From Trichosphaerium sp. ATCC 40318 (Eukaryota; Protista; Tubulinea), in contig JALMLS010000423.1 in assembly GCA_038496445.1 (NCBI GenBank), positions 124,001 to 188,000 of the forward strand: 64,000 bases of DNA. The letters run 5' to 3'. A program made the translations under genes and the position numbers. This document shows positions 5,890-64,000 of the stretch, piece by piece. The notes beneath the pieces were generated by a model. It did not search any database and was not told where the DNA came from. It was given only the letters and a program-made list of their open reading frames with translations. Every line of letters begins with the position of its first letter. Position 1 is the stretch's first letter.

Positions 5890-8800
5890 TTAACTAAAAT
5901 TGCCACTACCAGCTTGATAACGTAAGCTTTGAAGTTTTTCATTGAAACTTTGTTCCATCCTTTCCATACGTAGTAGAATTTGAGCGTTCTGTCTTTCAAG
6001 TATTGTAGTCTTGAGTTGAAGAGCATCAACCTTTTCTTGAAGTCTATAAAAAAAATCAAAATCAAAATTTAGCTGCTTGTGGAACAACATCTGAGCCAAA
6101 ACTCTCAGTAATAGGAATAGTAAAAATATTAAACAGACTGAATACGAAATATCAATAAATAAACCAAAAGTAATCGACGTCTATAGAACAAACTGACACG
6201 TGGTGGATTTTTTTGGATTGTTGAGTTTTTGTTTCTTCAAAAAAAAATGGTAGTGACGTACTTTATTATCTCCTCCTCATGTACTCTGGAAGATTTTACT
6301 GTTTTTGCAATCAACGTGTCTGCAGATGGCAGATTTTCACGTGGCACTTTACCTTTCTTTATGCTGAATGTAGCCTAAAACAAAACAAAAAAATAAGTCC
6401 GTTTACATCACAACGTCAATACTTCAGTCTGTACTTTGCTTCAAAAAAAATGGTTGAAGGTTGAAGCTTACAAGCTCAGAGTGATATTATAATGAGTTCT
6501 CCAAGTTCTTTTTTTAAGAGCGAATGGAGGAACACAAAAAAAGGAGTATAGCACGTACTTTGCCTTTGATGCTTTTGGTTGATGACCCAATTATTGCCAC
6601 ACCACGTGCAAGACCACCACGTGGTGATTTCTTATTATTGATATCACTTTGATTATCATTCTCAGTCTTCTGTGGTATGTAAATAGTACCAGCATCAACA
6701 TCATCAATGGAAGTGCAGAAATGTTTCAATTTTGATGTCAAGTTAGTTAATTTATCTAACTTCGAGATAGAAGCAGGTGGTGTTGAAGGACCTTTGATGT
6801 ACTTGCCTAAAAGGTCGAATAGGTTAGACTAACCCAAAACTATATTATGTTTAAACAACTTACGTAATTGACGGACTTCTATAACTGTTTTGGAGCATGC
6901 TTGTTCACCTTCTTTGTCGATAGCAAATCCGCAAAAAATAAACGCTTGTTGTTCAGTGCTATTAAAAAAATGAGCTTAAGCGTCACTTCTTCATTTTGCC
7001 GTTTCGTACCATATTACAGCAGCGCTATTTCTCGCTGGCAAAGGAATAGGAACATCAACAAGAGTCCATGCAGAAAGTTCTAAGAAGTAGAAAAAATAAG
7101 AAAAAAGAAGGAAAAGTACACGAATTATCTTTGGTTATTGTTGAGTACCTGTATTAAACAATATGATATCATTGTAACTGTAAATAAGAAATGGGTGTTA
7201 ATAATCTAAGATACACAACAAGAAGTTCACATACGTTCTTCCTTCGCCATGACCTCCATAAAGAAGAATATGTTTACCAAAACGAGAAATTGCCATTGAA
7301 TGACGCATTCGAGGTACATGACCACTAGGTACGACATTATACCAATACTCCTCCTCTGAAACAAATATGTTAATACTACGTAGAAATCAATGATAGCGTA
7401 GGTACGCACTGAGGTCATAATAATGGCCATCATTAGAACAAGTGTTTCTCTCTGAAGCTCCGCCAAATAGAAACAGCTTCTTTCCGTTGTCAGTAGCCAT
7501 TAATAGCGCTGAGTATCTAGGTAGTGGGAAGCTACCATTACTTGATAGTTCCTTCCAAATATGTGTTTCTGTACAAGAGACCAGCGTCAGAAATCAAGAA
7601 GTTGGGAGGATGTAAAACACTTACCTGTATCAAAGCAATAAAGATTTCCATAATTTTCTTGTTTTTGCGGATTCTTCCTAGAGTAACCGCCAAAGATATA
7701 CATACATTTACCAGATTTACAAGCTGAATGAAAAGCGCGACCATGAGGCATATCTCCTGTACCAGTGACACGTGTAACAACAAAGGAATCTAAAAGACAA
7801 TCAACAAAAATCTTGTGTTAAAAAAGAAAACAAAAGTCAATGCAAGGTCAATTATTTTGCACGTGCTTGTGTTTAGCATGTATAAAACATCTGAGAATGA
7901 CTCATCTTTTCTTTTACCACCAAATATATAGAGAGTATCACCTATATGAACAGAAGAATGTCCAGAAAGTGCAGGCATTGCAACATCTCCTCTAATTTTT
8001 TTACGACGCCATTTGTTTGTATCTAGTCGAAAAAGTAAGTGATTGTTGACACTTTCTCTTATGTCACATACCAAGATAAAACAGGTATAAATCAGAGAAG
8101 TAAGAGTCTCCATCGAACCCTCCAAATAGAATTACTTTACGACCTACAAGATTACACGTGTGATGTGCTCTGGACACAGAAGTTAAAATACGATTCATGT
8201 GTAAGCTGAAACTGGTACTCACCTCGGCCTAGGACCTTTTGAAGTTACATGCTCGATCCAATATTTACGTAACATCTTACTCTTAAGATCAAGTATAAGC
8301 GTAAGGAAATGATCCCGTTGTCCTCTACAAAGACTTTAATTTTGAAGTAAAAAAAAAATCGTATAGGGATAACAAAAAACTCGCTTACTCTTCTGCGAAA
8401 CCAAAGACAAAAGATTCTCCAGTCATATAACTAAGTTTAGCAAAAGCTTTAGACTTGGATTCACCTATTTAATAAAAGAATAAGTACAAGAGAAAGCCGA
8501 AAATGAGTTGAAAAATCCTTCATACTTCCGGAACATTTCTCGACTTTACTGTGCTTTATAAGGAACAATGCTTGAAATCCTAGGGATTGTTTTCTTCTCA
8601 TAGTCTTATTTGCAGTAAAAAGAAGTAAATCAGACCAGATAAACACGTGAAAAGAAGACCCTGATTGACCTTTAATACATCTTATCTCCATCTCATCCAA
8701 TAACTGTCTACCATTCTTTACTAACTCAACCTTGTTCACAAGTCAGAATATATAGATGTTTGAAGTAAAGACATGATAAAGACAAAAGGCTGCTATCATG

Positions 8801-11572
8801 AGAAAGTGTACGTACAGTGCCAGGGTATCCAGTTAGTGTCTTAGCAACTTTAAGACCAAGTTTTGCTGTATCTGAAAGTTGCTTGGAGCTGTCAAGTTGT
8901 GTTGATACTTCTTCCATTTTAGAACACGCATTTTGCAAGTTTTCATAATCAGGATGGTCTGGTGATGTACGTTTAAGTAAATCTTTGATAAGAAGAACAA
9001 GTCGAAGAGGTCTTTGGATAGGCATGATAAGAAAAGAAGCATAATCTAAGCCTTTTGGGTCACTTTTGGTCGCCATCAACTACAACGCCAAGTTAGGTTT
9101 TTACAACGCGCTATTAACAAAAAACAAAACAAGCTATGTAAAGCTGCCACAAAAGATCCATAAAATGACTAAAGGGTGCCGTCACAGCCTTAAATTTCGA
9201 GTTGAATTCAGAAGTGTACTTTTTCTATTGCTGCGAATTCTTTGTTTTTCCTCTGTAGCCTCTTGTAAAGTAGGTTTGCTTTATCAAAGTTATTCACATA
9301 AGTCTTATACAACTTGAAAAATTGGAACTAAGTGAGAAGTCAGTAAACAAACCCAATCACAGTGATAATGCTGAGAAGCAAAGAAAAAAGCACGTGCATA
9401 TTTTAAGAAAACTTGACCAATTTTCGCCTCTGGTGTCCAGTTTGATACAATAGTCTCAATCTAGAATTATATCTGTTTAATGCAGTAACAAAGTATTGTA
9501 AATCCGTACTTCTGGCATAAAATGATGTTGATGGAATTGAAGAATTGTTTCAATGTTAGCAACTAACAAAGGTTGGCAAAAGTTATTAAATTTTTTAACT
9601 ACGTACACAACAACGCCTGATCCTTTTCGTCAATTATGCCCTTTAACGGTTTAATACCTTCCTAAATCACAGTTATAATCATTGAACGCTAACATATGAT
9701 CTTACTTCAACAAGGTATGTAAGGAACTTGATGTATTGCTAAAGCAAATGTTACTATCTGATTAATAAAAAACCCGTTATTACCTGCTCTGTGCTCAGTA
9801 GTTCTTGTGCTACACGAGCCACCTTTTCTTCTTTTGCGCTATTACTATTCTTACTACCTTCTTCGTCTTGACAAGTATCATATTAAGTCAGTAAAAGAAG
9901 ATGAACAGATCAAAAAAACTAACCATCAGCATCATCCTTTTTCACTTCAAGTGTATCCGCTTTACCCTCTTTCTCCCACCTAATATGCCTTTTTTGATTT
10001 TTCGCACGTGTTGTAGGAGACTTTGAAGACACAGAAGATTTTTTAGGTGCATCAGGCTATCATTGTGGTGAATGTCATGGTAAAACGCCAAAAGAAACTG
10101 TACCGATCCTTTTTTGTCTCTTATTCTCTCACGCGATTTAGATCTTTTAGGACCTTCTTTGTTCGCTCTTGGTTTTCTCGATTTCGGTGATAACGCAGAG
10201 CCTGCTCTTTTTCTTCTTCCATTATTAGTTGATCTTGCAGGTTCTAAGGTAGGAGGTTTATCAACTTCAACACGTGGAGACTCTTTATAGTCATCACTGT
10301 CATCATCATTGCTTTGTGCTAACTCCTTGGCTTCAATATTAGTTTCTCCACCCTCTTCACCTTGATTAAAAGCATTGCCTCCCTTATGTAAACGTTAGTA
10401 CGTCCTGTAAAGTGAAACATGACAACAAGACATTATTACATGACTAGTGTTACGTTGTTTAGGCTGTACCCTGCCGCCTATCTCCCATTTAAATTCTTTT
10501 TTTTTAGGTTCAACGGCTGCAGTTGCTTGTATTTTCTCGTGGAATGCTGTGAATATTTTTAACTTATCACGAACTTTTAGCTTAGACAAATCTACAAAGC
10601 AACATAAGAACCGACAAAAAGTAGAAAATAAAAGAACGAAAAAAATTTATCACGTGATAATTAAAAATGTTTCAAAACAAAAAAACAAAGCTAAGGATAC
10701 CATCGTATATGTGGACAGAAGGCTCGTCTGAGCGTGTTTTTGCAACTGGTTTACGTGTTATTTCCGGTGTGTCCATATCCGCATAATTCAATAAATCTTG
10801 TTCTACGCAGGTACGTGAATAATGCATTCCGATATAAAATGATAGTTGACATAAATTTCTAAACTAAGCATGTAATTGCGCACCCAAGCTACGTCTTCTG
10901 GCTTTACGTATTTCTTTTAGACTTGCTTTGTCCTTCTCCGCTAATTTATACAATAAGCAAACAACCGAAAAACTCGAAAAACATGCAAAAAAGAACGAAC
11001 AAAAAAAACAAATACAAAAAAAACATTTTCGTAATTTTTTTTGCGTTTTTTCGGTAGGTATATCACGTGTTTTAATAAAAACCGAAATAATTGTTAAAAA
11101 TGCCGAAATACTTCTCAAGAAAATTTCTTATCGCAATAAACAATATTTCTTGGAGCCACAGAGGAAGAAATCTGCTCGTTTGGATTTTGAGATAAAAAAA
11201 AAATACCGAAAACTCTTTTTTCTGTGTAGCCTTTAAAAATAGGATGTTAACATTCCATACCTACTACTGGCATCGATTTTGCTTTTGATTTATTATAATG
11301 ATCGTATTCTTCATCGTTAAATTCTTTCTTCTCTTTAGATTGCTCTCCTACGCTTGTAGGTTCATTTAATTCATTATAACTATCCGAATCGCTACTGAAG
11401 GTTTGGTCATGAGATCCATTGCGTTCTGCGGCTAAATCTTCCTCTCTACTCCCCTCAGATGACTCTTCGAAGTCCTCGCCGTATTGAATTGTTAGTTCAT
11501 CGTCAGCAGCACGTGCAGCCTCTGTAAATGCTTAGAAAACGTTACAAGTATGCACGTACCCATGTCTGCCAT
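5890..11572 (-). CDS. RhoGEF (DH-PH) protein with Kelch repeats and C-terminal coiled coil
   Basis: DH motifs (LDYASFLIMPIQRPLRLVLLIKDLLKRTSPDHPDY; GQVFLKYFQFFKLYKTYVNNF), PH exon (FHVFIWSDLLLF), Kelch exons (GHSSVHIGDTLYIFGG; PHGRAFHSAC). ATG at 11572; about 25 introns including two GC-AG. Confidence 0.85.
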
Positions 11573-11896
11573 GTTAAACCGCGTATAGTACTAAAAGTAC
11601 CGCGGAAGGAATGTGAACGCATCCATTTGTTCCCTTTGCGGACTAAGCACTGTGGAGTCGCTCACACTTGCAACAGCGCATTGTTTACGAGTATCAATGA
11701 GCTATAGCAGTGTTGCATAAACATAAGCAATTAATAGGGCACGTATAGCGATTCTGTGACTTGCAAACGCAGAACAACAGTGTATAGAATAGCTATAGAC
11801 TGTTTGTACACAAATACTACAAAATATATACGAGCTACGTCTCCGTCGGTCCACGTGGTTGAATAACAGAAAATCCCACAACCGCCTTTTGTTAGC

Positions 11897-12723
11897 ATGA
11901 GCTTCTTCAGTGATCATCAGAGTGCGTATTTGTTGCAAATTAAGCATAATACTGATTTTTAAAAAGAGATTGGCGTTTTTCTCACGCTAGTGGGTACCCT
12001 TTTTACCTTCTTGGGTGTTGTAATGTTTTTGGATAGAGGTTTTTTAGCAATTGGCAACGTACGCAATAATTGGTATTTAGACGCGCTACGACGTTGTTTT
12101 TTAAGTTTAATAGCGCGTTTTACAGACTTTTGAGAGTTCCGACCTTTTTTTCTCGTGTTAATACGCTTCCTTAGCTCTCTTTTCTGTCTGGAGTTACACT
12201 ACTACTTGGTGTGAACAAGACACTACGATTTTTTATGCAGAGAAGAAAGATAAAAGGAACCTTGTGTTTCCTTGGCGGAATATTACTCGTTCTATACGGT
12301 TGGGCACTTGTTGGGTTAGCAGTAGAAATATTTGGATTTATTAACCTCTTCGGGTACGTAAAAACACAACTGAGCAGAAAAGCACGCTCACACAAAGCCT
12401 TTGAAACAAGTTTTACAATGACACTTATTTTTTTTTCCTCAATGCATCTGTATTCACTCTCTACACGCCAAAACAGCGTTTAGAGTAATTGTGGTACTTA
12501 TTTAAATCCTCCAGTTGCTCTTTGAAGTGAGTTATTCGCTTATTTCTTTCTTTTAGTGATTTTTTCCCTCAAATCCTACCTTTTGTACGTCGTATACCAT
12601 ATGTTGGCCTCATATTCGACCTACCAATAATCAAGCAGGTACGTATTGATTGTATAATAGTCTTTAAGGTTTTTATAGATTGCAGACCGCATTGTACATA
12701 ATGGAAGTGGTTTACCCGTGTAA
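11897..12723 (+). CDS. GOT1: Vesicle transport protein Got1
   Basis: Spliced product MSFFSDHQKIGVFLT...MFLDRGFLAIGN LSFLSGVTLLLGVNKTLRFF...KIKGT...EIFGFINLFGDFFP...LPV* matches the Got1 family signature. Confidence 0.92.
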
Positions 12724-13010
12724 ATAAATAATAAACAACAAAATACCTCTTGCATTCCATGACTACACTAATCGAAACGGGCATTCCACGTTGCAAGCGT
12801 TCTTCATTTCACATTCCTGGTCCTATCAGCAATTCATAAGGTTTACCTGTTCTCGTAGTGTTGTTTTCGTTCGATGTGCAAGTCAGATGTGTCAATCTTG
12901 GCAATACAGGTCAATTGCTTTATTTCTCTCTATCACTATCCATAACAGCAGTAGGTAACAAAACAGTAGCGCTCTAATTGATTAGAATACCGGTTTACCT
13001 GAAAGTACAG

Positions 13011-14070
13011 CCTATTTTACAATGACCGCTCAGTACTCTCTTTCCGATATACTACGCATGAGCATGTCTGGGGAGCTTTCTGAGGCACAAATAGCTGTTT
13101 GGCTTTCAAAACGCGCAAAGAAGGCCAATGTACCACTACGCTACCTTTCGCATGAAGCTGTAACAGAGTACGTTGCTTCGTAGCAATAAAGACGTTAAAA
13201 TGACATTTGAAGGTTTGAAAAGGAGGTAAAAGAAAGCGAAGAACTAAACAAAGCAATAGAGCCTGCAATAGAGATACTAGATAGCGAGAAAGGTAATACA
13301 AACGTTGAGCTGTAAAAAAGCTAACAATTGTTCTTCAGACCCGCCTGCGCCAAAATCACCTTTAATGAAGCGAAATATGGCGTCTAAACAGAGTACGGTT
13401 GATTTTCAACTTGTAGTTCTTTGAATGCTCACAAAGCGTTGCAGAACCGGTGAGAAAGCAAACACCTAGAAAAACGCCCAAGAAAACGCCAAAAAAGACA
13501 TCACCAAAGAAAGCATCTTATTCAATCTTGATGGCTTTCGAGAAAGCTCGCACAAAGCCTAAAACACCTGTAAAGAAACCAAAGAAACCAGTGAAGCAAA
13601 TAGAACCAGTTATAGATATAATAGACTCTTCTCAAGAGATCAGTATACCAGAAATTACACAACAAAGCCTTGGAGGTAGTTCTGACTCTAATTCGATTTT
13701 TGGTGATTCTGATGATTACGATGACTTGAGCGACTTTAAGAGTATTCCAGTAACAATGACGTCAACGCCATCAAGTGTTTTTAGTGACTTTGCATCTTTT
13801 GATACTACACCAAGGACAATTATAACTCAAAAGAAAACAATCAAAAAGCAAAAGAAGAAAAAACAATCTCCAATCAAAAAAAAAACTTTAAAGGCAAAAA
13901 GCAAGTCTCCTAAAAAAGTTTCTCGAGATAAACGTACTTCTAAAACTGGAAAAAAAAGAAAATCACGTGATGAAATCAAAAAGAAGAAATCTAATGATTT
14001 TCTTGTTGACTCAGATGATGAGTCAGACTTTCAAATTTTCGCAGCTAGGAAAAAAACAAGAAAGAAATAA
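13011..14070 (+). CDS. Lys/Ser-rich low-complexity, probably nuclear protein (5' end unresolved)
   Basis: Large terminal exon 13445-14070 with TPKK/SPKK motifs and basic tracts; upstream exons at about 13011-13168 and 13339-13391 with GTACGT/GTACGG donors. Confidence 0.55.
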
Positions 14071-14355
14071 AGCTAAGGCTGCAATGCCTGTTGTACATAA
14101 CAACTTATTACTTTAACAATCACCAAAAAGTAACCACTTCATCGAGCTCTACTGGCCACTACGGGAATAAATCCAAGAGGAGCTGAAACTGCGATCAAGC
14201 AGTACTGTTAATAAATCCAGTTACTTTAATTAGTGACCATTCGTTGGGAAATACTAGACCAGACCACATTAGGTACAAGCAGACACCATTTGCCAGAGTA
14301 ACCATTTTGTGTCAGTGATGCTATGTAGTGCGTGTTAAGCCACTAACTCCAGATA

Positions 14356-15183
14356 ATGGGAAACAGCAACAGAAAGCCCGCTCCTAAAGATCTAAGCGCT
14401 CTAGAAAACCTTCCTAATGAGCTCAGTACGCATTATATTGAGTACTTAGAGGATAAAGACAGACACAGTGCTGCAGCTAGCTGTAAGCACCTTAAACAGC
14501 TAATATACGAATACGTTGGGTATAAACGAGTAAATCTGAAGTACATTTCTTCAAATGACGTCGCAAAGTATAAAGGCTTCCTTCTTCGATCAGAGATAGA
14601 TGCTACAAGCGCAACAGATGAAGATTTGAAGATTTTAGTAGGCGCTAGACATGTAAATCTAAAAGGGAACAAGAAGGTCACTGACGAGGGCATAAGTCAC
14701 TTGAAGGGTGTTTATTCGATCAACCTTTGTAATACAAAGGTAACAAACAAAGGTGTCATTGCTCTAGCTGGTGCTCATACAGTAAACCTTAACGGATGTT
14801 ACCGTGTATCAGGTTTCGCTATAAAATCTCTTGCTGGAGCTCATATACTTCGCTTGAACAATACAGATATATCAGACGCTACAATAAAACAACTGGTTGG
14901 TGTGCACGTGATAGATCTTTGTCTTACGAGTGTTACAGACGAAGGTGTTGCTGCTCTTGCAAGCAGCGAGAATCTCAAATGTATTAATCTTCAGAAAACA
15001 AAAGTTACTGATGAAGGCATGAAGCACCTTTCAAACGTTCATACTGTTGACATTAGCTACACTGGTATAACAGATAAAGGCTTGGCATACCTCAAAGATG
15101 TTCACATTTTAGACTTGAGCGGATGTGAAGGAATTACTGAAGAAGGTAAAAAATTGTTAAACGCACAAAGCATATCAGGATAG
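14356..15183 (+). CDS. Intronless F-box/LRR protein with possible N-myristoylation
   Basis: MGNSNRK start; LENLPNEL F-box-like motif; LRRs VTDEG(I/V)xxLxGVHxIxL. Confidence 0.85.
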   Translation: MGNSNRKPAPKDLSALENLPNELSTHYIEYLEDKDRHSAAASCKHLKQLIYEYVGYKRVNLKYISSNDVAKYKGFLLRSEIDATSATDEDLKILVGARHVNLKGNKKVTDEGISHLKGVYSINLCNTKVTNKGVIALAGAHTVNLNGCYRVSGFAIKSLAGAHILRLNNTDISDATIKQLVGVHVIDLCLTSVTDEGVAALASSENLKCINLQKTKVTDEGMKHLSNVHTVDISYTGITDKGLAYLKDVHILDLSGCEGITEEGKKLLNAQSISG

Positions 15184-15498
15184 ATGTGCACATCGCTATC
15201 TCACATTGTAGAATAAACAGATTCTTTCACGACCCAAATAGAATTAACATATTACACATTTCAGGCGATAAATACCAAATTAACACTTTTATAAACAAGT
15301 CAAATAAACCCCTTAACAATTCTTGTTTTTTTGATAATTATCCAGAATCTCGGAGTACACTAAATGTACAAAGGTGCTGCACATACATGGCGAGCAAAGT
15401 AAACATGACATTATGTGAAACTCTGAAAATGGTAAAAAAATTTGTACAGTCAAGACCGGCCTCTAATTTTCATTGTACAATTCCGTACTACGCTCGAC

Positions 15499-18400
15499 AT
15501 GCCACACAGTACAATATGGGTTGCTATTATAGCTATAGCAGCTGTATTAGTTCTGTCTAGTAGTGTTAAACTGTCTCCGAAGGAGAAAAAGCTACGTGAC
15601 AAATTAGAAATACCGTTGGACGTCCAAAAAGTACGTAATAATACATAAAACCAATGTTTTAATCCGTTTTAGGTTTGTTTATTTGGCATGGCTGCCCACA
15701 TGGACTGGGATTGGTTAAACTGGTTTCCAACGCTTTTAACTGGTAAAAATCCGCCTGACGAAGCTGGACAATTCAGTTATGGTACAACAGACAGGATTTT
15801 ATGAATATTTAGCGTAAATCGCCTGTATTCACTTTTTTTACGCTATAATAGACCCAAACCAGAGTCCTCAGTTCGTACAACGCATTTTATCACTTGCTTC
15901 TTCTCTACTAGAAAAAGAGAGCTCGTACATCTACTCTGTTTGTGAGATGGGTTTTTTGAAAGGTTTTGCTGAAATAGAGCCAGAATTGTTCGACGCAATG
16001 AAAAAATCAGGTAGAATGCGTATTGTTGGTGGAGGCACGTGATCATCATTTTTAAATGTAGCTAAATTTTTTTTTTCTTTTCTTGTCGTTTTCGAATGAA
16101 ACTCGTTTTATTCACTTTTTCTTCAAGGTATAACGTCGCCTGGTATGTACAATGAACTTGGGGTAATTGATTAGGTAATGCTAACAACACCTTGATTTTT
16201 AGATAACTTGTTACCTCACGGTGAAGCTTTTATTCGCAATTTTTTGTTGGGTTTGGAGTTTCTTGATGAGAATAAAATAGAATGGACTCAAAAGGTATCC
16301 TGCATTAGTCGTTATATTTCTGATAATAATCTAGGTATGGCTTCCTGATAACTTCGGTCACGATTCTCAACTCCCAATTGTACTACAAGCCATGGTGAGC
16401 CAAGAACAATCATCGACCTGTGTATGTTTTAACTTTTTTTTTAAGGATGCTGAAGGTGTTGGTTTTGCGCGAGTTAGTGGTTCATGCCTTCAAGGTATAT
16501 TGATATTCCATTCGAAACAATGATGCAATTATGTGTATAGGGCCTGGAGCTGTAAAACCAGGGACAAGGACAGCGTTCGACCTCCTTCTTGATGAGAAAA
16601 CTGGAGGCGTTGATTTTTGGTGGGAAGCAACAGATGGTAACATGCCTCACTGTCATTTAACAAAATAACACAGATACCAGGCTCTAAAGTTTTCTCTCAC
16701 TTTCTAGAAGCCCATTACTCCCAAGGATGGAATATTGATGCTATTTCAAGAGCGTAAGATGACACGAAACACAAATATTTTCCGTTTAATTTTTTTTCAA
16801 AATAGATACAACAATGTCACAGAATTACGCTACTGTGATAATACATACCTAGCCACATCTCCAACTGAACAAATATCATCTTATTTAAGGGTTAATCAAC
16901 CAACAGCTGCTTCAAGTACCAGTTACGTTCATGTATCAAACGATTTCGCTCTTCCAAAGAAAGACTTATTAAAAGCACGTGTTTGGGAAACAAATTAACA
17001 TCAAGAGCCGTTCTCATCAATTTTTTAGTATTTGAGCGATTGGAATACCGCAAACAACGACTCAGATACTCATATTACTATGGCGAGCTTTTCAGAATAC
17101 GCTGATATGGTGGTCGCTGCAGATGAAAAACAACCTGGTAAGTCCAACTTATGTGTTTCCCTACAAATGCCTTTAATGACTTATGTTAGGTTTATTGAAA
17201 ACGAGAAGCCACCATGGTACCTCACCAACAACTTCATTCGTAGCAGCTCCATACTGGTACAACCAAAATCCTCAAAGAATCTACAACCTACAAAAGCAGC
17301 TAAACAATTTTTTTAGGATGGGTTTTTATGCATCTAGAATGCTCCTTAAATACTATCATTACGAAACATCACGTGCACTAATGACAGCTGAAATTTTTGA
17401 GCGTATCACGTGTAAAGTACAATCTGTATGCTACAGTGATGCGTTAGCTGAAGGGTGGAGCCAATTAATGCCTAGTACACATCACGATTGTACGTCCATT
17501 ACCTTCGCTCCTTAAACATCATAACATTGCCTTAACATTACCTTATTACAGATATAACTGGCACAGCTACTGATTGGGTATATAAAAGCAGTTACAAAGG
17601 AAAGGATGGAGAGCAGTTAGCACTTAGTAAAACAGCATACAACACGGCAAAATTAACACTAAAAAATGTGTTAAACTCTTTGAGTAACTCAATAAGAGCA
17701 ACAAAGGGTGATTTATTAGTATGTCCTTTTTTTTATTTCTTGTCTGTCTACAAACTAAGATTTACTCTTATTACAGGTATTCAATCCAAACGGAAATTTT
17801 AGTACTGGTATTGTTTCAATGTCAGGAGACTATCCTGGTGCTCCTAAACCGGATCAAATCGCTGCAAATGGCGATCGTTTAAACCTCGTTTCGAATGTTC
17901 CATCAATGGGGTGGAAGACACTTACCAGTACTCAGCCTACGTTTAGTGGTACACCAGTAAAAGCATATACCAAAGATGGCGCACAAGTCCTGGAGAATGA
18001 ACTTATGGTTGTTGTACTAAATCACACGTGCGCTTTTTAATTAACCGGGTTTTTTTTCGATGTTGGAGATATTTTACTCATTTGTGCTCATCTAGAACTA
18101 ACGGATATGGTATTATCTCTATCACTGATAAACATGATGGTAAAGAAGTATTGGGTGGACCATCTAACTTGATATCAACGTTTTCAGATGGTTTGTTTTT
18201 GATTTCTTTTCTTGTTCTTATTATTCAATTAGCTGGAAATATTTACGTGTACGGTTATGAAGGACAATGCAACCCAGAGTTCGCAAATCAGAAGTTAAAA
18301 AGCACTTTCTCGCATGCCTCTATTACTGAACAGGGGCCTATTCGCGCAACAGTATCTGCTAAGGTACACGCTTCCTTTTTCTGACATAAACTTCTAACAA

Positions 18401-19839
18401 TGTACCTAGCAATACCTCTTTTTCGCTTCAGGCACAGAAAGCAAACATGATCTAGAATTCAGTCTTGTTGCAGGCACGTGTTAATAACGTTATTACAACG
18501 TGTTTTTCTTATTTCTTTATAGGCGAACCTATCCTAAGAATATCTGTTTCTGGATCTGCTAATGCAGCTACAAGTGTGTTCGCAACTTTTAAGTTTGCCA
18601 ACACTACTTCGTTTATGGTTCGTATTACCTTGTTTTTTGAATGATGTTTAATCGCTTTATTCCTATAGGGACATGGTACACCACTTCATTGGGATATGAA
18701 AGAAGCTTGGCCATATGGCCAGGGAACATCATTCAACGCAGTGATGCATGCAACACATAACTATGTTGTTGCTTATGATAAAGAAAAAAAACCGCTCGGC
18801 GCAATTTATCACGGAGGAATACCTGCATGGGGAGTAAACGTAGTAGATGGTAACTTATATGGGTAAGTAGCTTTAAACCAAACCATAACAAGAGGACTAC
18901 TCTATTTATTCCTCAAGCAATGTCAAAGAGATTACAACGTAGTCCTACTAACTTTGTTTCTTGATAGAAACTTGATGAGAAATAATCCAAATAGTTACTG
19001 TGATGGAAAGGTAAGAGAAATGCCATTCTTGTATTTCTTAATCTAACAAACGAGTAAGGGTGCTAATGGTGGTGATTTTGATAACCACACGCTTACTTAT
19101 GCACTAAGAATTCCTTCTTCTTTGCCTTCAATGGGTACTTTGTAATAGAGGTAAACAACCTTGTAATTAACGAATATTTCTTCTTAGAGAGTGGACAGCT
19201 TCTTGTTGAATCTAAGTCTTACCACACTCCTTTGATTGGTCTTCATTCTAATGGATCTACTACATCAACTAAACTTCCAGAAGTGTTTTCTCTAGTGACT
19301 GTACGAATCTTAAGAGCGCCTTACACATCTTGCTCAACACTTTCGTTGGTTTTTATTTAACCAAACACAAGTATTTATGATATTAGAAAGGTGTCCATAA
19401 GACACACAAATTGTGGATTTCTTTGGTTTTTTTTTCAGGATTTCACGTGAATTAATATCCAATATTTAGGTTGAAAAACCTGCGATGGTTACAGCTGTTA
19501 AGGAAGGTTCGGATAAGTCCAAATCTATTCTTAGACTATACCAACCAACAAACAAACCTGTAAAGGTTCATGTTGATCTTAATCCATACTTATGGCCTTC
19601 AAAAACAACACAGGTACACCACAACTCTACTCCAATAATTCACGTGATTTTTTTCTGAAAAACAAAACTTTGATCAATTTCAACAGTTCTTTGCGCAGGC
19701 CCACTGCTTCCTATTTCTTATATTTTTGCAGGTTTACCTCGTATCAGCTGTTGAACGACCATTTAAAAACACAGGAGTACAAATTATAAATACTAATGTA
19801 ACCATGCAATACTCTCTTGCTACTTTGATGCTTGAGTAA
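15499..19839 (+). CDS. Secreted/lysosomal glycoside hydrolase family 38 alpha-mannosidase
   Basis: Signal peptide; AHMDWDWL, GRMRIVGGGITSPDNLLPHGE, WLPDNFGH, YWMGFYASR and HHD motifs after splicing; over 20 introns, three GC-AG. Confidence 0.9.
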
Positions 19840-20784: not shown

Positions 20785-20948
20785 GTTTATTATTTTGAGA
20801 TGTATTTGATTGGTCAATTGAAATCACGTGACAAAACGGGCTGAAACGTGATTTAACGGTACGGGGTTTTTTTCGTTTAAAACTCCTAACAAATGATTCT
20901 CTGTGTAACATGTGGTGATGCTCAATGATTTAAAACTATCGACTAAGT

Positions 20949-45362: not shown

Positions 45363-45572
45363 CAACCCCGAAACTCATCAAGAAATCATTAAAAATAAAG
45401 TTACCAACACTAATAACCATAGTGTTCTACAATAGTATTGTTAGTGACTACAATTGGCAAACAAACGTTTTCATAAACTCGCGGGTTGAGCAAGATCGTT
45501 ACGGAGATACCTTTGTGCGTTTCTATTAAAAAACTTGTGATTGAACAATCTCAAAAAAAGTACAATCGCACA

Positions 45573-52990: not shown

Positions 52991-55900
52991 GATGAGGTAA
53001 ATTTATAGAGGTTCTCATTGGCCCGGCACCCGGGTTAAATATGCTTGTTTGATTCACTTAAAAAAGATCGTAGTACAGCAGCAAAGCTATTAAATTTGCC
53101 ATGATAATAATGGTATGATATCTGATGTTTTTGTTTCCGAGCCGGAGTAGAAACAATAGTAGTACACATTTCTTAACAGTTTTCGCATACCACAAAATAT
53201 CTATTTTAAACAAATGCTGCACACTGTGCTCACATGTATGCTCCTCGTTATGGTAGCTCTAGCTACAGAAAAGGTGTTCAGAATAGGTAGCGTGTATCCT
53301 AGTGAAGGACGTTTCCGCGGCAATTCCATATTACAACGCAACAGTCACGAGATGTGGCGAGACACGGTATACAAATTACTACAATTTTAAGTATTTCTAA
53401 CATACAAAAAGGTAAACGAAAGAGGAGGGCTACTAATTAATGGATCTCTTTATACAGTCGAAATTATATTCACTCCAGTTGGTACGCTATACATTCATTT
53501 GAACCCACAACACCACCAAAACTTTCAAGTATTTAAAACGCTCGCTCCCTCACTTCACGTTGAAGACACGTGCAGTTTTGTGTTGAAAAACTGCTGTTCT
53601 AACAGTATTTTTTATAGAACCTACAGGCGAAGCTACTGCTAATGCAACAAGAGTACTTATTACAGAGCGCAATGTAAACATGATTTTTCTTGTACGTGAG
53701 CCTTATTTTAGAGTAAACTTAACATTTTGTTAAGCCACTTTCAACTGAACTTGGATTACCAGCTGCTCTCGTTGCAAATGAATATAAAATCAACTCTATA
53801 TGGGGTTAGTGATACTTAACTTTTTCAGTGGTTAACGTCAACACAGCTGCATCCGGACAATCAACAAATCTTATTTGTGATAAAGCTCTGAGGCCTCCTT
53901 GCAAGGTTCCATTTGGGCGTCGATTGCCATACACTATTGAGTTCCTTATTCCGAAAGAAATAGTTATGACCGAGCCATTGAATCTATTGGCAATCCAGAA
54001 TGTGAAGTCTGTTGCCTTGTTTTGGGAGAGTAAGTTCGATTGTGTTAATTGGGTACTGACAACTTCTAGCATCTCTCAGAGGCATAGGTGTTGGCGCTCT
54101 TAGAGGTATATCGTTCTTGGGGTTTGATTTAGTTTACCAAAAAGAAATCAGAGACAGGTTTGATCCCGAAGGTCAAGAATCAGATGTACGAGAAATGGTA
54201 GAGAAGCTTAAGGATTTGAAACCAGGTAAGACCGATCTCCATTCTTCATTTCTTCTTTACTGATTCTTTTTCTATAGATGTGGTGATTGGTGGCACTGTG
54301 ACGTCATGTGGAACGCTTATGAGAATAGCAAGAGAATTGAATTTCAATGCAAAGGCAAGAAGAAAAAAAATTCTTATTTCTCACATCTTTAGGCATACTT
54401 ATTGACAGTCCCTTGTCTTCTTCCTGCAAATCTTAAGAATATAGGCCCGGATATCAAATACGTAATGGATGCGGGAAACATGGTGAGAATTTGTTCTATA
54501 AATGCGAACTTACAGTGGTTTTCCTTAGTGGGATGAAAATCTTCAAAGCAATATCTACGATGAAGATGATCCAAATATCAGACACTATCACTTCCTTAGT
54601 AACGGCACATTGTCATCACCTCAATTGTTTGCGCAAAAGTACCGAGAAAGATTTGGTGTATCTCCAGGCCAGCATGGTATGACAGGATATGTCATAGGCT
54701 ACATGGTTCAGCATTCTGTTGAAAAAGCAAAGTACGACACCAGGTTTTTATCAGAACGCACGTGATTTATTTATTTGTTCAATCAATAGTTCTCTCGATA
54801 CAGATAAGATACAAGATGCCATTAATAATATGAACATGAAAAGTTTTGGTGGGGAGTTTCAATTTGATTTGTATGGACAGAATTTAGGAAGATTCTCTCT
54901 TACTTATCAATTGGATCAAGACTTGAATTATCAAGTTGTAGCACCTTTGTTTGCTGTCACGACACCTTTCATATATCCAGCTCCTAAGTGGGATGAACGT
55001 GAAACCACATACGGGTGGTATAGTACGTGTGAACGTTTAGTCACCAATTCTAAGCCATTTTCTGCAGAAACAACAGCTGAACGAGTTGTGCTTGCTCTGG
55101 TTTCATTTATTATTTTAATAACAATGGGGCTTGTAATATGGGTAATCATATTCCAAAATAATCGAATAATACGTGCTTCACAACCTTTGTTTGTTGTTCT
55201 CACCTTGGTACGTATCTTTTAAGTCCTTTAAGTACACTTCGCATGACTAACTATTGAAACAGATTGGTTCAATCATTATGTACTCAACTGTTTTTTTCTG
55301 GACTCTACATACAGACGACTTTCATTGCAATATGTTGCGATGGTTGCTTTGTATAGGTTTTAGTGTACGTTTACTATTTTTAGTTTGATTTCGATCGCTT
55401 ACAGAGGAGTAGTTGACTTATGGATCGTTGTTTGCTCGGATCTATCGTATTGGGCAGATTTTCCGTGTTGATACTTTGGAAATAATTAAAGTCACAAACA
55501 TGATGATAATTCCTATTGTTGCTGGTATTGTTGCAGTAGAGGTTGTGCTCCTATCTATTTGGACAATAGTAAGCCGTTCACGTGCAGTACTAGAACCAGC
55601 CAAACCGTATATTTTATCGGATGATTACTTTGTTTGTACTTTCGGAGACAATGACAAGATATTCTTTGGTATATTGGCTGTGTTCAATATTGGTATCATC
55701 ATATACGGTCTATATTGGGCAGTAAGAATATGGAAACTAAAGTCAGTACTATACAACGAGTCCAAGTACGTAAAAAAAGCGCTATCATTTATCTTTTTTA
55801 ACATAGTTTTTCTCCAATAGATTTATTGGATTCTCAGTCTACACTCTCGCTTTCTTCATTGCCATATTAGGCATTGTACAAGTATGTTATTGTATGGGAT

Positions 55901-56390
55901 TTACTGGATACTAAATTAACGCTTTGTAGGTGATTGGAGGTGATAATCGGACACTGAAGTTCGTGTTACGATCTGGAAGTATTGTGCTTGGACCTTTCGT
56001 GTCAGTACTATCTTTGGTAATACCACGCATGCACTACATGATGCTTGACACCGAAACAAGTATTTTTAAAAGAAAAACAGGAACAAGTATGGATCTTTCA
56101 AGTGCTACCAAGGGATCAACAGTAGATGATACAAACGGTGATTTAAAACAACAAGTTAAGGACTTGAAAGAAGAGGTAAAGTACCTAAAGAGCAAATTAG
56201 AGAACCTAAAGGATGAAAACGATGAGGACAATGATGTAGAGCAACCAGCGATAACATCACATACAAGAGAATAAAGTGGAAGCACTTAATGTTGTCTAAT
56301 GCAAGAATGACTACGAAAAGCGTTAGTTGCCCAAAGAGAATTGTAGTGAAGTTGTTTTGTAAGGAATAAAAATAGTTTGAGATGTTAGTT
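52991..56390. repeat. Right arm of the inverted duplication
   Basis: Reverse-complement match to 45573-48957. Confidence 0.93.
53214..56274 (+). CDS. Family C GPCR, copy 2
   Basis: Same exon structure and motifs as copy 1. Confidence 0.88.
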
Positions 56391-57151: not shown

Positions 57152-60100
57152 TTACTGAGGACCTTCATAACGTCCTAGTTCTTTGAGCCTATTTACTCTT
57201 CTCAAGAACATTTCTTCAGGTATTATCTTTATACCCCATGAAGCTGCTTTGGTAAGCTTTGAGCTTCTACCACCAGTATCACCAACTATCAAATGGCTTA
57301 CATCTCGGGTTATTGAGTCCTTAACTTCTCCACCCAAATCCTTTACAATCTGATGTGCTAGCCCTAAACCAAGATATTAATTATACAACAAAAGAGAGAA
57401 TAGAAATACGATAATTTACTTTTTTAGAAAAGCGGTGTGGCCGTATGTGATTGTCAAAAAAGAAAAATTACGAGAAAAAGGAGAAATAGCTCAGGGAGGA
57501 GTTGAACCTCCGTCTACTCTTCATGAGAGAGTCGTGCTAGACCGTTACACCACAGAGCTTTGAGATGTTAACAATGCGCTATAGCGTCACGAGCGACCAA
57601 AAAGAAGACAATAGCGTGACAATGAGCGCAGTTCAAACCAAAAAAAAAAAAGGTTTCAATGAAAAGAATGTCAAGAATGTTTTTCCAAGTGCTTGTTTAA
57701 TTACCTCTAGTAAAACCGGCTAGTTTTCCAGTGAATACAATTAAATATCCTCGAAGTAAAGGTGGTGCTACTATATCACTTTGTACAGGCGCAGCCTAAA
57801 GTTAAAAATAAGTCAAAAAAAAATAGACGGTTTCTCAATGTTTTATCAAAACTGGGGACGTACACGTTCTAGTTGCATGCCAATAACTTTAAGACTATCA
57901 AAAAGTGCTATGTTCTTTTTATTTCTAAAGTAATCGTATATAGACAAAGCAACTTTTTCTCCAACACCTACCACAAAGACATTAACGTTCTGCAAAAAAG
58001 TGTTCTGGTTTTTTTCTGAAAAACAGTTTTTGCATCTCAACGACAAATTGTATCTAGTACGAGAAGAAGATATGTACCTTCGATTGATTTAAGAGATTTT
58101 AAAGAAGCGCTTCTGATCATCTCAATTGAAGAGAATCTATCACAAAGAAGACTTGCTATAAACAAAAGGTTAAAAAAACGTGAACATAAACAAAAATAGA
58201 CCAAAATCGTAATCGCTTTTTTTTTCCTTTCTCAATTATCAGAAGCATATTCTAGGTCGTACCTGTGCCTTTTCCTACGTGTCTTATACCTACACCAAAT
58301 AGAATTTGTTCATATGATGCATTCTTGATTCTATCATCAATAGAAGATAAAATAGCCTGAACTCTTCTTGCACCCCAACCTTCTCTCATTTCAAGGAACT
58401 CTTTGTGCTTCTTTAAGTTCAAAATATCAGGAAAATCTAAACAAGAGAAACATTAGTACTCACTAGGGAGCAATGTAATTGAACAAGGATTGCATCTTAA
58501 GAAGCAACAATACTAAAAAAAATATGCAGGCAAAAAATTTACCTTCAATCAGCCCGAAGCTAATAAGATCTGCAATCGTAGAATTACCCATACCAGCAAT
58601 GTCAAGACACTGCTTTGAGCAAAAGAAAGCAAGCTTTGGCTCAAGTTGTAATGGACAATCACGTAATGTACCTGGAGAATGTATAAATAAAGCACAAAGA
58701 ATCTTTAACATTGAAAAAAAGACCCAAAAAGCACTAAATTCGACACCGTACAATAGTGGTCAGCTTGATCTGGTGATGATTCAAGCCTGGATCCGACTTC
58801 ACAAGGGCAGTTTTTCCAGTCAAGTTTTGGCGGAGATATATTGGAAGGTTCCTCTAAACGAAGTAAGCACAAAAAACAACGTTTCAATCAAAATCAGAAA
58901 TGTGCTTCACACGAGTCTGAGTATTTTTAACTCGCGCTCTTGTTATAGAAGAAAATAAATTAGCTTACCCCTGCATTTTACAACATTTGGAATAACGTCT
59001 GCACTCTTTTCAATTGTTATCCAATCACCAACTCTGATTTTCTTGGATTTAATAAAATCACTGTTGAAAAGAGTTGCGCGAGCAATCTTGCTGCCTAATG
59101 TAATTTCATAAATAAAATCTAACTTCCAAAATACAATGTATAATACCTGCAAGATCCACAGGATCAAAATCAGCAACAGGTGTAATCTTACCAGTGCGTC
59201 CTACCTCAAGAAATATTCAACACAGGCGCGGCAAAAATGGTAAAAACGGTGCATACTGTAAGCTCGATATTACGTAGTATAGTTTCCTTCTGAGCTGCTT
59301 TGAATTTGTACGCTATTGCCCAACGTGGTGAGTGCGCTCTGGCACCTAACAAGACAACGTGAGCGTTGCAATCACAGCAAAATAATCAAAAAGGAAGCTC
59401 CCCCTCCGGGAATCGAACCCGGGTCTGTCGCGTGACAGGCGACGATGATAGCCACTACACCAAGGGGGATGCGTTGTTGCTGAAAAGAGCTCACTGCAGC
59501 AACCGATTCAGAAAAATTGATAGGTGTGCACACCTAAGCAAGCAGTGCAAACGTGATGTTTACGACAGAACCAAAAATGCATACCAAGTCGATTTTGTTG
59601 TTTGATATCATTAACTTTGAAAACAATGCCGTCTATTTCAAAATCAAAGCTGTTGCGCCTCTCTTCAAATTTGGTAGCAATAGAAGTTACTTGCTTCAGA
59701 TTAGCACATTCTACAGCCTCTTTATCAGCCGTTAATCCCAGTTTGCGTATTAAATCGAGACCTTCCACTTGTGTTGCTACAGAAAAATTGTTACATACAA
59801 CGATAATTCGCATGTCAGCTTATCATGATAAATTATACAATGGCAAACGTACTAATTGGTTGTCCTGACCAATTGTGAAGCGAATAGCCCATGAACAAAA
59901 GTGATTTGGCTGGTTGGGTATCTGAGGAACTATAATCATCTAGCGTACTTATAAGAAACTACGAAAACATTCGAATCCACAAGTGCTCAAAACTTTTAAA
60001 TAGAAACGCACGTGCCAAGGTGTATGCGTTTCATCATGCCGCTGGCCAAGTTGCGAGGGTTAGCGTATTGCTTATTTTCTGGTAACTCAGCGTTTATGCG

Positions 60101-61121
60101 CTCAAACTCCTTTTTAGGTAAAACAATTTCTCCTCTAATCTCCACTGAAACTGGTTTGCCGTCTACATAGTGTTAATCAGAAGTAACGTGCAACAACAAA
60201 AACAATGCAAAAGATATGGTCTCCCCCTCCGGGAATCGAACCCGGGTCTGTCGCGTGACAGGCGACGATGATAGCCACTACACCAAGGGGGATACATTGT
60301 GGGGGTTAATCCCAAATGTCAGGAACCGATTTGAAAAATTTTAATCAAAAGAACATAAGCTTATGTAATGTTGTTCATACCATACTCCAGCGTCTCTGGT
60401 AAATTACTAACATAACCTTGACAAGTTTTTGTTATATCTTCGCCTTCAGTGCCATCTCCTCGAGACGCAGCTTGATAAAACTGACCGTCTTTATACACAA
60501 TACTGCACGCGATACCATCAAACTTTAACTCTGCTACGTATTTGTACTTGTTCTTATAATCAAGTCAGTCATTGTTGAAACATTAGTGAGTACCCGTCCA
60601 AGCGCCTTTGCAATGCGTTCATCGAACTCTTTGAGTTCTTTTGCGTTGTAGGTGTTCGATAGTGACAACATCTTCTCACTGTGCTTTATTTTCTTTGCGC
60701 TCTCTCCAACAGCCAATCCGACGCTTGCTGTCGGCGATTCAGGTAATTTAAATTGGTATCTTTGATGGCGTTAAAATTTTTTGATAGAAGCTGAAAAACT
60801 ACGTGCTTGGTCTCCAGTTCTACTAGTTTCGCGTTTAACGTATCATACTCATAATCTGAAATCTCAGGGCGCGATTCGTTAAAATACAGATTTCTATGCC
60901 TATATTTCATTAGCGTACGTACGTACTTGGTGGTTTTGCAAAAACAAACGGTACCTGTTGAGTTCGTGCGTGAGGTCTGTTATTTCTTTGGCTACCTTGC
61001 TTGGTAGTGCGCGTTTTGCATAAAATCGCCGAGTTTTGCCAGGCTTGGTACATTGTTTGGTACTGCGTTGCGTCGTGCGCCAGTACGATCGTGCCACGTT
61101 AGCTCTAGAAAGCGCCAACAT
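57152..61121 (-). CDS. ligA: NAD+-dependent DNA ligase (bacterial LigA type), intron-rich, with Arg-rich N-terminal extension
   Basis: Domain Ia [73 protein letters not shown], Cys Zn finger, HhH and BRCT (VFTG...LGG...SSKLTKA). Confidence 0.95.
57487..57559 (-). tRNA. Atypical tRNA with CAT anticodon (Met), in the last ligA intron
   Basis: AGCTCTG-TG-GTGT-AACGGTCTA-GCAC-G-ACTCT-CTCATGA-AGAGT-AGAC-GGAGG-TTCAACT-CCTCC-CTGAGCT-A folds as a cloverleaf; T5 terminator downstream. Confidence 0.8.
59398..59469 (-). tRNA. tRNA-Asp(GTC), intronic
   Basis: TCCCCCT...GTCGC-CTGTCAC-GCGAC...CCGGGTTCGATTCCCGG-AGGGGGA-G; T5 terminator downstream. Confidence 0.95.
60221..60292 (-). tRNA. tRNA-Asp(GTC), intronic, identical second copy
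   Basis: 72-nt sequence identical to 59398-59469. Confidence 0.95.
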
Positions 61122-61206
61122 ACCACACCGCTTGGCAACAAACGACAATGCGTTTTAGTTTCCTTAAGTTAGAATTTCTATATCTTCGCCCTGTAAGGAG
61201 CATAGA

Positions 61207-64000
61207 ATGATACCTGCTGCATTGCGAGCAGTATCATTGGTTAGCTCGTTGTGGCAAGAAGAGGAGCATGTGTTAAAACATCAAGATGTTCTACAGGCTG
61301 CGTCTGTGGAAGAGATTGAGTATGCTACGTTACTAGGGCAAACAAAAGTACACCGTGTCTATTTTCAAGCATCGTTAACAGGCGTAGAGAGCTATGAATA
61401 AGGTCGAAAGCGTTTGCCGTATAGCTCAGAGCGACAAAGAAGTATTATTTGCTTGGATTGGTACGCTTTGTCTTTTAAGCAAACATGCTAATTTGACTAT
61501 TTACGCCCAGATACCTTGGAAGCATTTCACAGATCATTTTCTGCTTCTTTAGCAACGGTTTGTAAAAAAAACCGTATAGAAGACCAAATACATGACCTTT
61601 CAACTTTATTTACGTCTCATGTACGTTGTACACAGTAATTCTAATTATCCGCTCCCATAACAACCAATATATAAAAACCCTTAAACATGCGGTCTGCAGC
61701 GCGTTTTATTGACTTTAACGCAAGGAGTCGGATTTTAAAGTGTACGTAAAGTATGTAAGTAGCTACGACAAGAAAGTGGCCATGTGCGATCAATTAGAAG
61801 CGAATAATGATTTATTCGAGCAGTTTTTAATGGCACGTGAGAACAACCTATTTCCTTTTTTATTTTTTAGGCAGTTTTTCGGTTTTTTGGATCTTTTTTT
61901 ATGTTAGGTTGTACACATTTACTAACAGTTTTACGAAGGAGTTCTCTGAGCAATCAGGTGGTTTTAGTCTTCGAGATGCATTATTGAGGCCACTACAAAG
62001 ATTTGCAGAGTACATTGTGTTGTTGAAGGTAGACAACGAAAAAAACCGTGTTTGGATGTTTTTATTCTAATGTTGTTGTTTGTTTAGGACTTAACGAGTT
62101 GTGAAGATGTTTCAAAAGAACTTGCATCCAGTTTACAAGAGGTATGTGGTTAAATAAGTCAGTTAAAAAACATTAACGTTATTTTTTTTCAATTTTAAAA
62201 GGCATGCTCAATCTTCACTACTATATCCTATCACACGAATAATGAAATGGCTATAGTATCTGAATCTACTCTCACTATTGAGAGAAAAAGAATTTCAGCA
62301 CGACATGGTGTTGTCAAGGTATTTATTAACAGAAATGTCCAACCGTTTTTTGTAACTGTTTTTTTCTATGGCAGATATTTGATTCAAAAAAGAAAGTTAT
62401 GGTACCAGTCGATTTTTCAAATGTAATAGTAGCAGAAAAGATGGTGGGTTTATCTACAAAAATTGCAGGTAAGCTTGATGCTATAAAGGATCTTGAGGTT
62501 TTCACGGTCACATAAAAAATTGTTCACAAGTCGTTAATTTTTTTTAGATTTTTATGCTTGTCATGTCAGTGGTATCAAGTTTTTGATGAAACAATTTGAT
62601 TTGAAACCTGAATCTCTCGAATTTTGGAGAAAAGAAGTTGCTATTTTAAATAATCTACCACACCACGCTAATATAATTCGGTACAACAATCAAAATCTTT
62701 TTTATTTTTTTACCAGTGAAAACCGAAAGTTGTTTTTTGTTAGAAAACATTGTCACGTGAACTGTTCACACCAAACTTTTAAAAAACGTCCGTGAACACT
62801 TATAACAAAGGTGATAGAGCCTGTTTTTTTGTTTTATTTGAACGTACAGTGACACTTTGCTTGTATTTTTTAACCAAGCATTTGTAGTAATAGAGTAATT
62901 ACTCAGTTTTGTTGTAGATATGTCTATAGCTCCGAGAAAGGTCAGCAAGTTCGTATCTTCTTGGGTTACTATTCAACAACACTACGCGCCATTTTTGATG
63001 ATAGAAGGGTATGTTTGTAATGATCCTGGGGTGAAACGACATTATATGAACGAAATTCTATTTTTTTCGAATTAACTTTGTTTGTGCTAAATATTACCCT
63101 TGTAGCGGCGAAATGTTCCTTTTACACTTGATGAGATTATTATTTTACTCAAAAATATTCTACGTGGTCTACAATTTTTACATACCTATGATATAGTCTA
63201 CAGGAACCTAAGTATTGACAACGTACGTAGTATTTTTTGTTTTGTGGGTTTTTTTAATGTTTTTTGTATCTACTCGAAAAGTTGTGTATTTTGGTTTAAA
63301 TGTCCGCTGTCAACTGATTACACGCTTTTAGTTATTTGTTGAGAATAATTCTTTGGGTGCTATTGCGACTTGCGTGTTGGGTAATTTAGACTACGCTAAA
63401 CCAATTACAGCCAATATCAAGGCCAAAACCAATATTGGCAAGCCGTGTACGTAATATCGATCGTTGACGTTCAGAAAAAATTGTTCTGATCAAATTCTTA
63501 GCCTACTCTGCTCCAGAAGTACTTGGATCAAAAAACAGAGATAATTACTCATTTTATGCTGACAGTAAGTCCATCAACTTTTTTGCTTGTTAATAAACCA
63601 ACCGGACTGTGTTATTAACACAAGTACACCGAAGACTCGTCTCCTCTAACTTTTGTTAAGTTTGGTCTTTGGGAATGGTTATATACGCTCTAATTAGCTT
63701 AAAAATACCTTATGAATCAAGATCATACAATATACTACCAGAACTTGAAGCTGGACGAACACCACAGCTACCAAAAGGTAATTAACCATCAAGATGAGAC
63801 TTTTATACATAAGAGAACTAAAACATTGTTAGATTTGCCTAAAGAGAAAAAATTCTTGGCGGAACTCTATCGACAATGTACAAATTTTGTTCCTCAGGTA
63901 TGTCACCCTTGATGTTGGTTGCAATACCACATATGTCTGTTCATAACACATACTGATTTATTGAAGGAACGGCCGTCTATAGAAACGCTACAAAAGGCAT
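61207..64000 (+). CDS. RhoGEF (DH) plus kinase-like domain protein, truncated by the window end
   Basis: DH motif LRDALLRPLQRFAEYIVLLK; kinase-fold exons MKQF...EVAILNNLPHHANII, ILRGLQFLH..IVYRNLSIDN, YSAPEV, WSLGMVIY. Confidence 0.8.

Follow-up and report, generated by a model that had tools for sequence, protein, structure and literature searches.

Introns that begin with GC instead of GT are a known class, but normally a rare and scattered one. U2-type GC-AG introns account for 0.37–0.86% of introns in five model species (PMC1557818) and for about 1% or less over animal, fungal and plant genomes (PMC7072748). In the model species, GC donors offset the mismatch at position +2 by a better match in the rest of the site, and the U12-type GC-AG introns are distinguished by the donor GCATCCT together with a branch site that resembles TCCTTAAC and lies near the 3' end (PMC1557818). 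GA-AG introns with a conserved flank reach several percent in Eurytemora affinis and Oikopleura dioica, which has been read as a sign of a relaxed spliceosome (PMC7072748). At the level of DNA composition, a comparable system is the cyanobacterial highly iterated palindrome HIP1 (GCGATCGC), the cause of which is debated, either methyltransferase-linked repair or selection (PMC4390886, PMC5861425). Here we describe eight GC-AG introns which all start with GCACGTG. They lie in a 64-kb stretch of DNA from Trichosphaerium sp. ATCC 40318 (contig JALMLS010000423.1, hereafter the window), in which the palindrome CACGTG is found far more often than expected.

The eight introns resemble the U2-type GC-AG introns of animals, plants and fungi in their GC..AG ends, normal length, pyrimidine tract and CTAAC-like branch sites, and also in that the rest of the donor is perfect to the local GT consensus (PMC1557818). 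They differ in their share of 5–13%, in the seven fixed first bases and in the G at +7, which completes the palindrome. We infer from the U2-like branch sites and acceptors that they are probably removed by the major spliceosome. U12-type identity was ruled out, as all donors read GCACGTG and neither an ATCC motif nor a U12-type branch site is present in the eight introns. With the GA-AG lineages they share a non-canonical donor class at several percent with a conserved flank; however, the donor there is GA, with AG upstream and A downstream, while here GC is locked to a genome-wide palindrome. In the literature searched, no paper was found that ties CACGTG to GC-AG introns or reports a GCACGTG donor, a genome paper beyond that search being possible, and the literature found on highly iterated palindromes deals exclusively with cyanobacteria.

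The window has a G + C content of 37% and is gene-dense, and its introns are very short with a median of about 70 nt. An earlier note on this DNA had listed eight introns with a GCACGTG donor. The eight-intron GC-AG observation is confirmed: all eight have a GCACGTG start and an AG end at the listed coordinates, the junctions being supported by complementary DNA (cDNA) for three and by reading frame and homology for five. The cDNA evidence consists of contigs from four public runs (X1–X4), which were placed on positions 14200–20100, the span with three of the eight introns. That the runs represent cDNA is evident from the contigs of all four, which omit introns, and X3 and X4 additionally bear template-switch cDNA adaptor tails.

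All three introns with cDNA belong to a GH38 alpha-mannosidase-like gene on the forward strand (15688–19839), for which the cDNA joints yield one open frame of 886 codons and 23 introns (20 GT-AG and 3 GC-AG). Mapping of RNA junctions, which had been suggested together with the list, shows the GC..AG ends of each. Intron 16975–17028 (54 nt, donor GCACGTGTT) is defined by the joint 16974>17029, which skips 54 nt with GC..AG ends and no positional slack in X1, X2 and X3. The joint 18471>18521, found in the same three runs, skips 49 nt and can slide by up to four places, but canonical ends are obtained only for GC..AG at 18474–18522 (donor also GCACGTGTT); the other registers would give AG..AT, GG..TA, CA..GG or AC..GC. 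Intron 16035–16127 (93 nt, donor GCACGTGAT, frame IVGG/GITSP) is followed by a micro-exon of 15 nt at 16128–16142, on the far side of which lies a GT-AG intron. The contig of X3 runs from 15851 to 16035, continues with 13 micro-exon letters and resumes at 16202. It carries TATAACGTCGCCT between 16035 and 16202, keeps the frame and fits the order of GC..AG intron, 15-nt exon and GT-AG intron; a canonical acceptor is obtained only with the GC..AG cut. Run X2 is labelled as another organism and is 95–99% identical to the window. It splices the GC-AG junctions 16975–17028 and 18474–18522 as well, so a diverged strain or species exists for a DNA-level comparison of donors.

The 20 verified GT donors of the GH38 gene are degenerate (GTACAA, GTAAGT, GTATGT, GTGCGC, GTTTGT, GTACAC and others), whereas the three GC donors are identical in seven bases. 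The palindrome meets a splice site in a second way in the same gene, where CACGTG at 18025–18030 lies over the exon-intron border (..CAC/GTGCGC) of the GT-AG intron 18028–18095. The joint 18027>18096 was found in X1, X2 and X3 with GT..AG ends and no slack, and this donor is otherwise weak, with G at +3.

For the five introns without cDNA, two long open frames typical of the respective family are connected by the GC donor alone, while the GT four bases further on leads to stops. The requirement for a GC donor and the frameshift caused by the downstream GT, both claimed previously, thus hold for these five. Two of them interrupt a RhoGEF-Kelch gene on the reverse strand. Intron 7790–7866 (77 nt, donor GCACGTGCA) lies in the Kelch part, with positions 30–86 of Pfam PF24681 matched upstream and positions 92–136 downstream, an interval accounted for exactly by the split codon plus four residues; it was also chosen by the donor-blind gene finder described below. 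Intron 9328–9397 (70 nt, donor GCACGTGCT, frame KIGQVFLKY/FQFFKLYKTYVNNFDKA) lies in the RhoGEF (DH) domain, and its spliced peptide aligns over the junction with RhoGEF homologues, gap-free in 51 of 79 cases. In a gene for an RRM protein on the reverse strand, intron 26939–27108 (170 nt, donor GCACGTGGG, frame HVFVGGLNPSVSKETLM/ARFKKHGEIESCTLI) gives a complete RRM with the GC splice, whereas the GT at +5 disrupts the frame; frame and motif were judged by eye here, and the gene-finder models took the same donor but different acceptors. Intron 59940–60015 (76 nt, reverse strand, donor GCACGTGCG) belongs to a gene for an NAD-dependent DNA ligase of the LigA type. The frame is open over the junction. 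The exon before the intron corresponds to positions 99–143 of the Pfam LigA adenylation domain and matches LigA chains in the PDB up to the junction. This intron was chosen by the gene finder when GCACGT was permitted as a donor. Intron 61833–61938 (106 nt, forward strand, donor GCACGTGAG, frame DLFEQFLM/EFSEQSGGFSLRDALLRPLQRF) is part of a second gene with a RhoGEF domain and has a TACTAAC branch site 15 nt upstream of the AG. Across its junction 29 homologues align, and the downstream exon corresponds to positions 123–149 of the RhoGEF profile. When the GC introns were compared by eye with regard to an introner or transposon origin, no mutual similarity was seen past the heptamer.

The gene finder was a small generalised hidden Markov model, trained on the RNA-verified GH38 gene and subsequently on its own output. 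With GCACGT permitted as a donor, it predicted 26 genes and 150 introns, seven of them with GC donors; the eighth, 9328–9397, lies where this run splits a gene. The share of GC-AG introns is 3/23 (13%) in the GH38 gene and about 8/150 (~5%) in the window model. Compared to the expected value of about 1%, the probability of such counts by chance is about 2e-4 for 8 of ~150 introns and about 0.002 for 3 of 23. In a donor-blind run, GT donors were scored with a matrix and GC donors received a flat score that ignored +3 to +8. This run called 12 GC introns, six of which start with GCACGTG, although the heptamer holds only 32 of the 5018 GC dinucleotides (0.6%; binomial p ~6e-11). The control dinucleotides GA, GG, AT, CT, TG, CA, AC and CC yielded 7–15 spurious introns each, so that the six GC calls outside the palindrome do not rise above noise. 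The intron counts of this run were dropped as a test for GC excess, since 12 GC calls do not stand out from 7–15 control calls and only the sequence make-up discriminates. A run restricted to GT donors missed every GC intron of the GH38 gene and put wrong introns in place of the three. Gene finders that use GT only or a generic GC matrix would mis-annotate about 5% of introns, hence a large share of multi-intron genes, and probably those of relatives too.

The 143 modelled GT donors have the consensus AAG/GTACGT, with A at +3 in 85%, C at +4 in 54%, G at +5 in 61%, T at +6 in 49% and G at +7 in 13%. The commonest hexamer is GTACGT (25/143), which agrees with the earlier view that the common local donor is GTACGT, one T>C change away from GCACGT. 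Given this consensus, GCACGT is simply the consensus with C at +2, as the known compensation rule would have it (PMC1557818). ACGT at +3 to +6 is present in 8/8 GC donors compared to 25/143 modelled GT donors. The G at +7 had been regarded as exceeding ordinary donor demand, and its low frequency among GT donors in general, as well as among those with GTACGT (5/25), supports this. Donors with ACGTG at +3 to +7 comprise eight GC and four to five GT donors, whereas those with ACGT followed by A, C or T comprise no GC and 20 GT donors. The distribution of GC and GT donors by the base at +7 yields a Fisher p of ~5e-5 to 9e-5.

CACGTG occurs 63 times in the window compared to 7.5–10 sites expected from base or dinucleotide composition, a six- to eightfold excess. 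Even a 4th-order model ranks it as the most over-represented hexamer, and it reaches 5.9 times its expectation given ACGT, while none of the other hexamer palindromes comes near this excess in the window. Its density per kb is 0.79 in exons, 1.47 in introns and 0.86 in spacers, and about two fifths of the intronic sites (8/21 modelled) are located at donor position +2. CACGTG therefore stands well above expectation in genes and spacers alike, as is characteristic of HIP-like words. Like HIP1, it is a short palindrome far over expectation in coding and non-coding DNA. HIP1, however, is bacterial, 8 bp long and 15- to 300-fold enriched, while the present word is a hexamer with a six- to eightfold excess in a eukaryotic nucleus, where it collides with splice donors. 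An origin of the excess by CpG decay or TET protection was rejected, because CpG shows no depletion (observed/expected 0.86). The spacing of the sites is near random (coefficient of variation 0.83), a test for regularity being not significant (p = 0.08).

The same excess was found in a related organism, represented by six messenger RNA (mRNA) contigs from JGI sample 3300016894 with MMETSP transcript names. These contain seven CACGTG sites in 7.45 kb compared to 0.9 expected (p ~4e-5). They derive from F-box-LRR genes, have a G + C content of 35–40% and share 70–75% DNA identity with the F-box-LRR genes of the window. The presence of the excess in the mRNAs of a relative indicates that it characterises the lineage and is not a product of the assembly.

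Within exons, 13 of 20 sites are in the frame xCA-CGT-Gxx, which offers the most synonymous freedom, and 13 of the 83 CGT arginine codons in the predicted coding sequence fall inside CACGTG. This suggests that the palindrome settles where synonymous freedom is greatest. The word TACGTA is also over-represented (40 sites, 2.8 times expectation), an excess that probably stems from GTACGTA, the most frequent donor heptamer.

The reading that we favour, albeit at little better than even confidence, is that these are ordinary U2-type GC-AG introns, the number and sequence of which reflect a genome-wide force that raises the frequency of CACGTG. The GC donors are best read as unremarkable in mechanism but exceptional in how many and how uniform they are. 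The starting point would be the local consensus AAG/GTACGT with its loosely conserved GT donors, as observed in the window. A C at +2 would be tolerated only if the rest of the site is perfect, a rule known from other species and seen here, which would leave GCACGT. A donor with GTACGTG is one transition short of CACGTG, and an enriching force, for which biased repair, gene conversion or weak selection for CACGTG are candidates, may then favour C at +2; for this step the association is observed, while its cause is inferred. Additionally or instead, the same force may keep the G at +7 in donors that already have GC. The outcome would be that about two thirds of donors with ACGTG at +3 to +7 have GC, whereas GC is absent where +7 is not G. 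By our own estimate, a sevenfold excess would correspond to a scaled coefficient of about 2, with gains of the word roughly doubled and losses cut to about a third. Also by our estimate, such a coefficient would outweigh a small splicing cost and yet be too weak to visibly deplete one-step neighbours. The ratio of GC to GT of 2:1 among xACGTG donors is below the sevenfold excess elsewhere, which fits a modest splicing cost of GC.

The earlier note had gone further and proposed that the process generating CACGTG drives the donors. This claim is partly supported. The link between the palindrome and the GC donors is real, specific and strong, while its direction and agent, namely conversion at +2 and a mutational process as opposed to selection, are unproven. 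In its strongest form, an active sequence-specific nuclear DNA process writes or protects CACGTG and overrides selection at the second most conserved splice-site position by turning GTACGTG donors into GCACGTG. We regard this form as possible but rather doubtful. Such a process could be linked to methylation or mismatch repair, by analogy with the proposals for cyanobacterial HIP1; among the genes of the window, none was identifiable as a methyltransferase gene. If it were true, the GC share among GTACGTG and GCACGTG donors would gauge the strength of the drive against the splicing cost. In E. coli, very-short-patch (VSP) repair favours CCWGG and depletes CTAG-containing neighbours, which illustrates that sequence-specific T:G repair can enrich a word genome-wide. 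This VSP signature, the depletion of T-containing neighbours, was not found in the window, where numbers are small: the ratio of observed to expected is 0.9–1.4 for TACGTG and 1.1 for CATGTG (37 vs 34). All one-step neighbours together amount to 204 sites compared to 197 expected, and only GACGTG/CACGTC is low, at about half of expectation (8 vs 15).

Several points weigh against our favoured reading. The statistics of the GT donors come from a self-trained gene model and a single 64-kb window. RNA support extends to three of the eight GC junctions, and the C at +2, being intronic, is absent from the spliced RNA contigs. TACGTG/CACGTA is not depleted (33 observed vs 24–36 expected) and GTACGTG donors persist (five modelled), so that a T>C conversion leaves no direct footprint. 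The link between GC and the palindrome is an association and as such fits a conversion at +2 as well as one at +7. Finally, the background probability of G after CACGT is 65%, and a G at +7 in 8/8 donors consequently has a p of only ~0.03. With this background, the GC donors could predate the G at +7, which would have been filled in later. Such a GC-first route predicts two to three donors among the eight with GCACGT followed by A, C or T (p ~0.03). A T>C change at +2 in GTACGTG requires no intermediate and predicts that such donors are absent, as observed. The preference for the +2 route over the GC-first route is mild.

The GC-first route is also at the centre of an explanation by compensation only, in which GC is near-neutral on a perfect-consensus donor, no drive acts at +2 and the G at +7 was added later by the palindrome excess. 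GC donors account for 8 of 33 perfect-consensus donors (24%), which is under the ~37% that base composition alone allows; 65–74% of all CACGT in the window continue with G, with +7 otherwise unconstrained, and a stronger consensus at GC donors is known from other species too (PMC1557818). On the other hand, this explanation has to account for zero instead of two to three GCACGT donors with a different base at +7, still needs a force acting on the palindrome, and leaves unexplained why the GC share is 5–13% here and <1% elsewhere (PMC1557818, PMC7072748). We consider it unlikely, though worth keeping in view. A dedicated recognition of the donor, by a U1 or U6 variant that pairs to +7 and prefers C at +4 or by an RNA-binding protein that reads GCACGUG, would make the G at +7 a requirement. 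It would be in keeping with seven fixed bases in all GC donors next to loose GT donors, and with a preference at +4 of C > A > T and almost never G, which fits the canonical 5' end of U1 poorly. Since G at +7 is not preferred among the GT donors, pairing of U1 to +7 is not general. Moreover, CACGTG is equally over-represented in spacers and exons, where splicing is irrelevant. The 64-kb window contains zero small nuclear RNA genes, only three transfer RNA (tRNA) genes. We consider dedicated recognition improbable.

Hardly credible at all is an artefact, whether through systematic errors that a modified motif causes in assembly or base calling or through misplaced junctions, the true donors being GTACGTG. 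The position of the +2 base outside the spliced RNA contigs would allow for it. However, the junction positions were taken from RNA, and the exonic CACGTG sites at 17370 and 17407 are covered by cDNA contigs of three runs with no differing letter listed. A blanket T>C error is contradicted by 33 TACGTG and 14 GTACGTG that persist in the assembly, and the mRNAs of the independently sequenced relative have the same palindrome excess. Returning to the enrichment of CACGTG as the shaping force, a causal link would make the window a clean natural case of a DNA-level bias, be it repair, conversion or motif selection, that reshapes a core RNA-processing signal. It would also provide a measurable trade-off of DNA bias versus splicing fitness. 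What sets the window apart in either case is a frequent, single-sequence donor class linked to a palindrome.

Two further GC introns had been listed for a pair of genes for class-C G-protein-coupled receptors (7tm_3 and periplasmic-binding domain) at 45572–48957 (reverse strand) and 52991–56390 (forward strand). They are not supported, because the sequence reads no worse if the motif is placed in the interior of a GT-AG intron. The only sense-strand GCACGTG in these genes, at 54758–54764 (forward strand), the twin of which starts at 47188 on the reverse strand, is probably not a donor. The gene finder prefers the GT-AG intron 54732–54789, reading VEKA/NSLDTDKIQDAINN, and the GC alternative keeps the frame too. 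We regard these GC introns as doubtful and left them out of the GC count. The two genes form an inverted duplication with 92.6% identity over 3.4 kb, and a shared intron would therefore count as one event. As an evolutionary comparison the twins are uninformative at 93% identity, all three CACGTG sites being kept in both copies.

The nearest proteins to those encoded in the window are MMETSP-derived transcripts and a Clydonella (Amoebozoa) protein at 35–40% identity. For the window's own proteins and transcripts, the public collections yielded neither an exact record nor a near-identical representative, and two scans of metagenomes were negative. Three tRNA genes are located on the reverse strand at 57487–57559, 59398–59469 and 60221–60292 (Rfam 56–61 bits), inside the intron-rich LigA-type ligase gene and in its sense orientation. 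Stop-free open reading frames (ORFs) at 209–1927 (reverse strand), 14356–15183, 39297–40421 and 41674–42846 (all forward strand) encode F-box proteins with LRR_6 repeats and a MORN_2-repeat protein. These ORFs sit among genes with up to 23 introns, and two of them, 209–1927 and 41674–42846, gain one or two introns beyond the ORF in the gene model. A protein search with the MORN-repeat ORF returned repeat matches only and was uninformative. F-box-LRR homologues are also encoded on a contig of JGI sample 3300046333 (positions 1–16552), which is dense, has a G + C content of 29% and carries genes for RNA polymerase subunit N and thymidylate synthase. This contig looks like a fragment of a giant-virus genome with relatives of the host-type LRR proteins.

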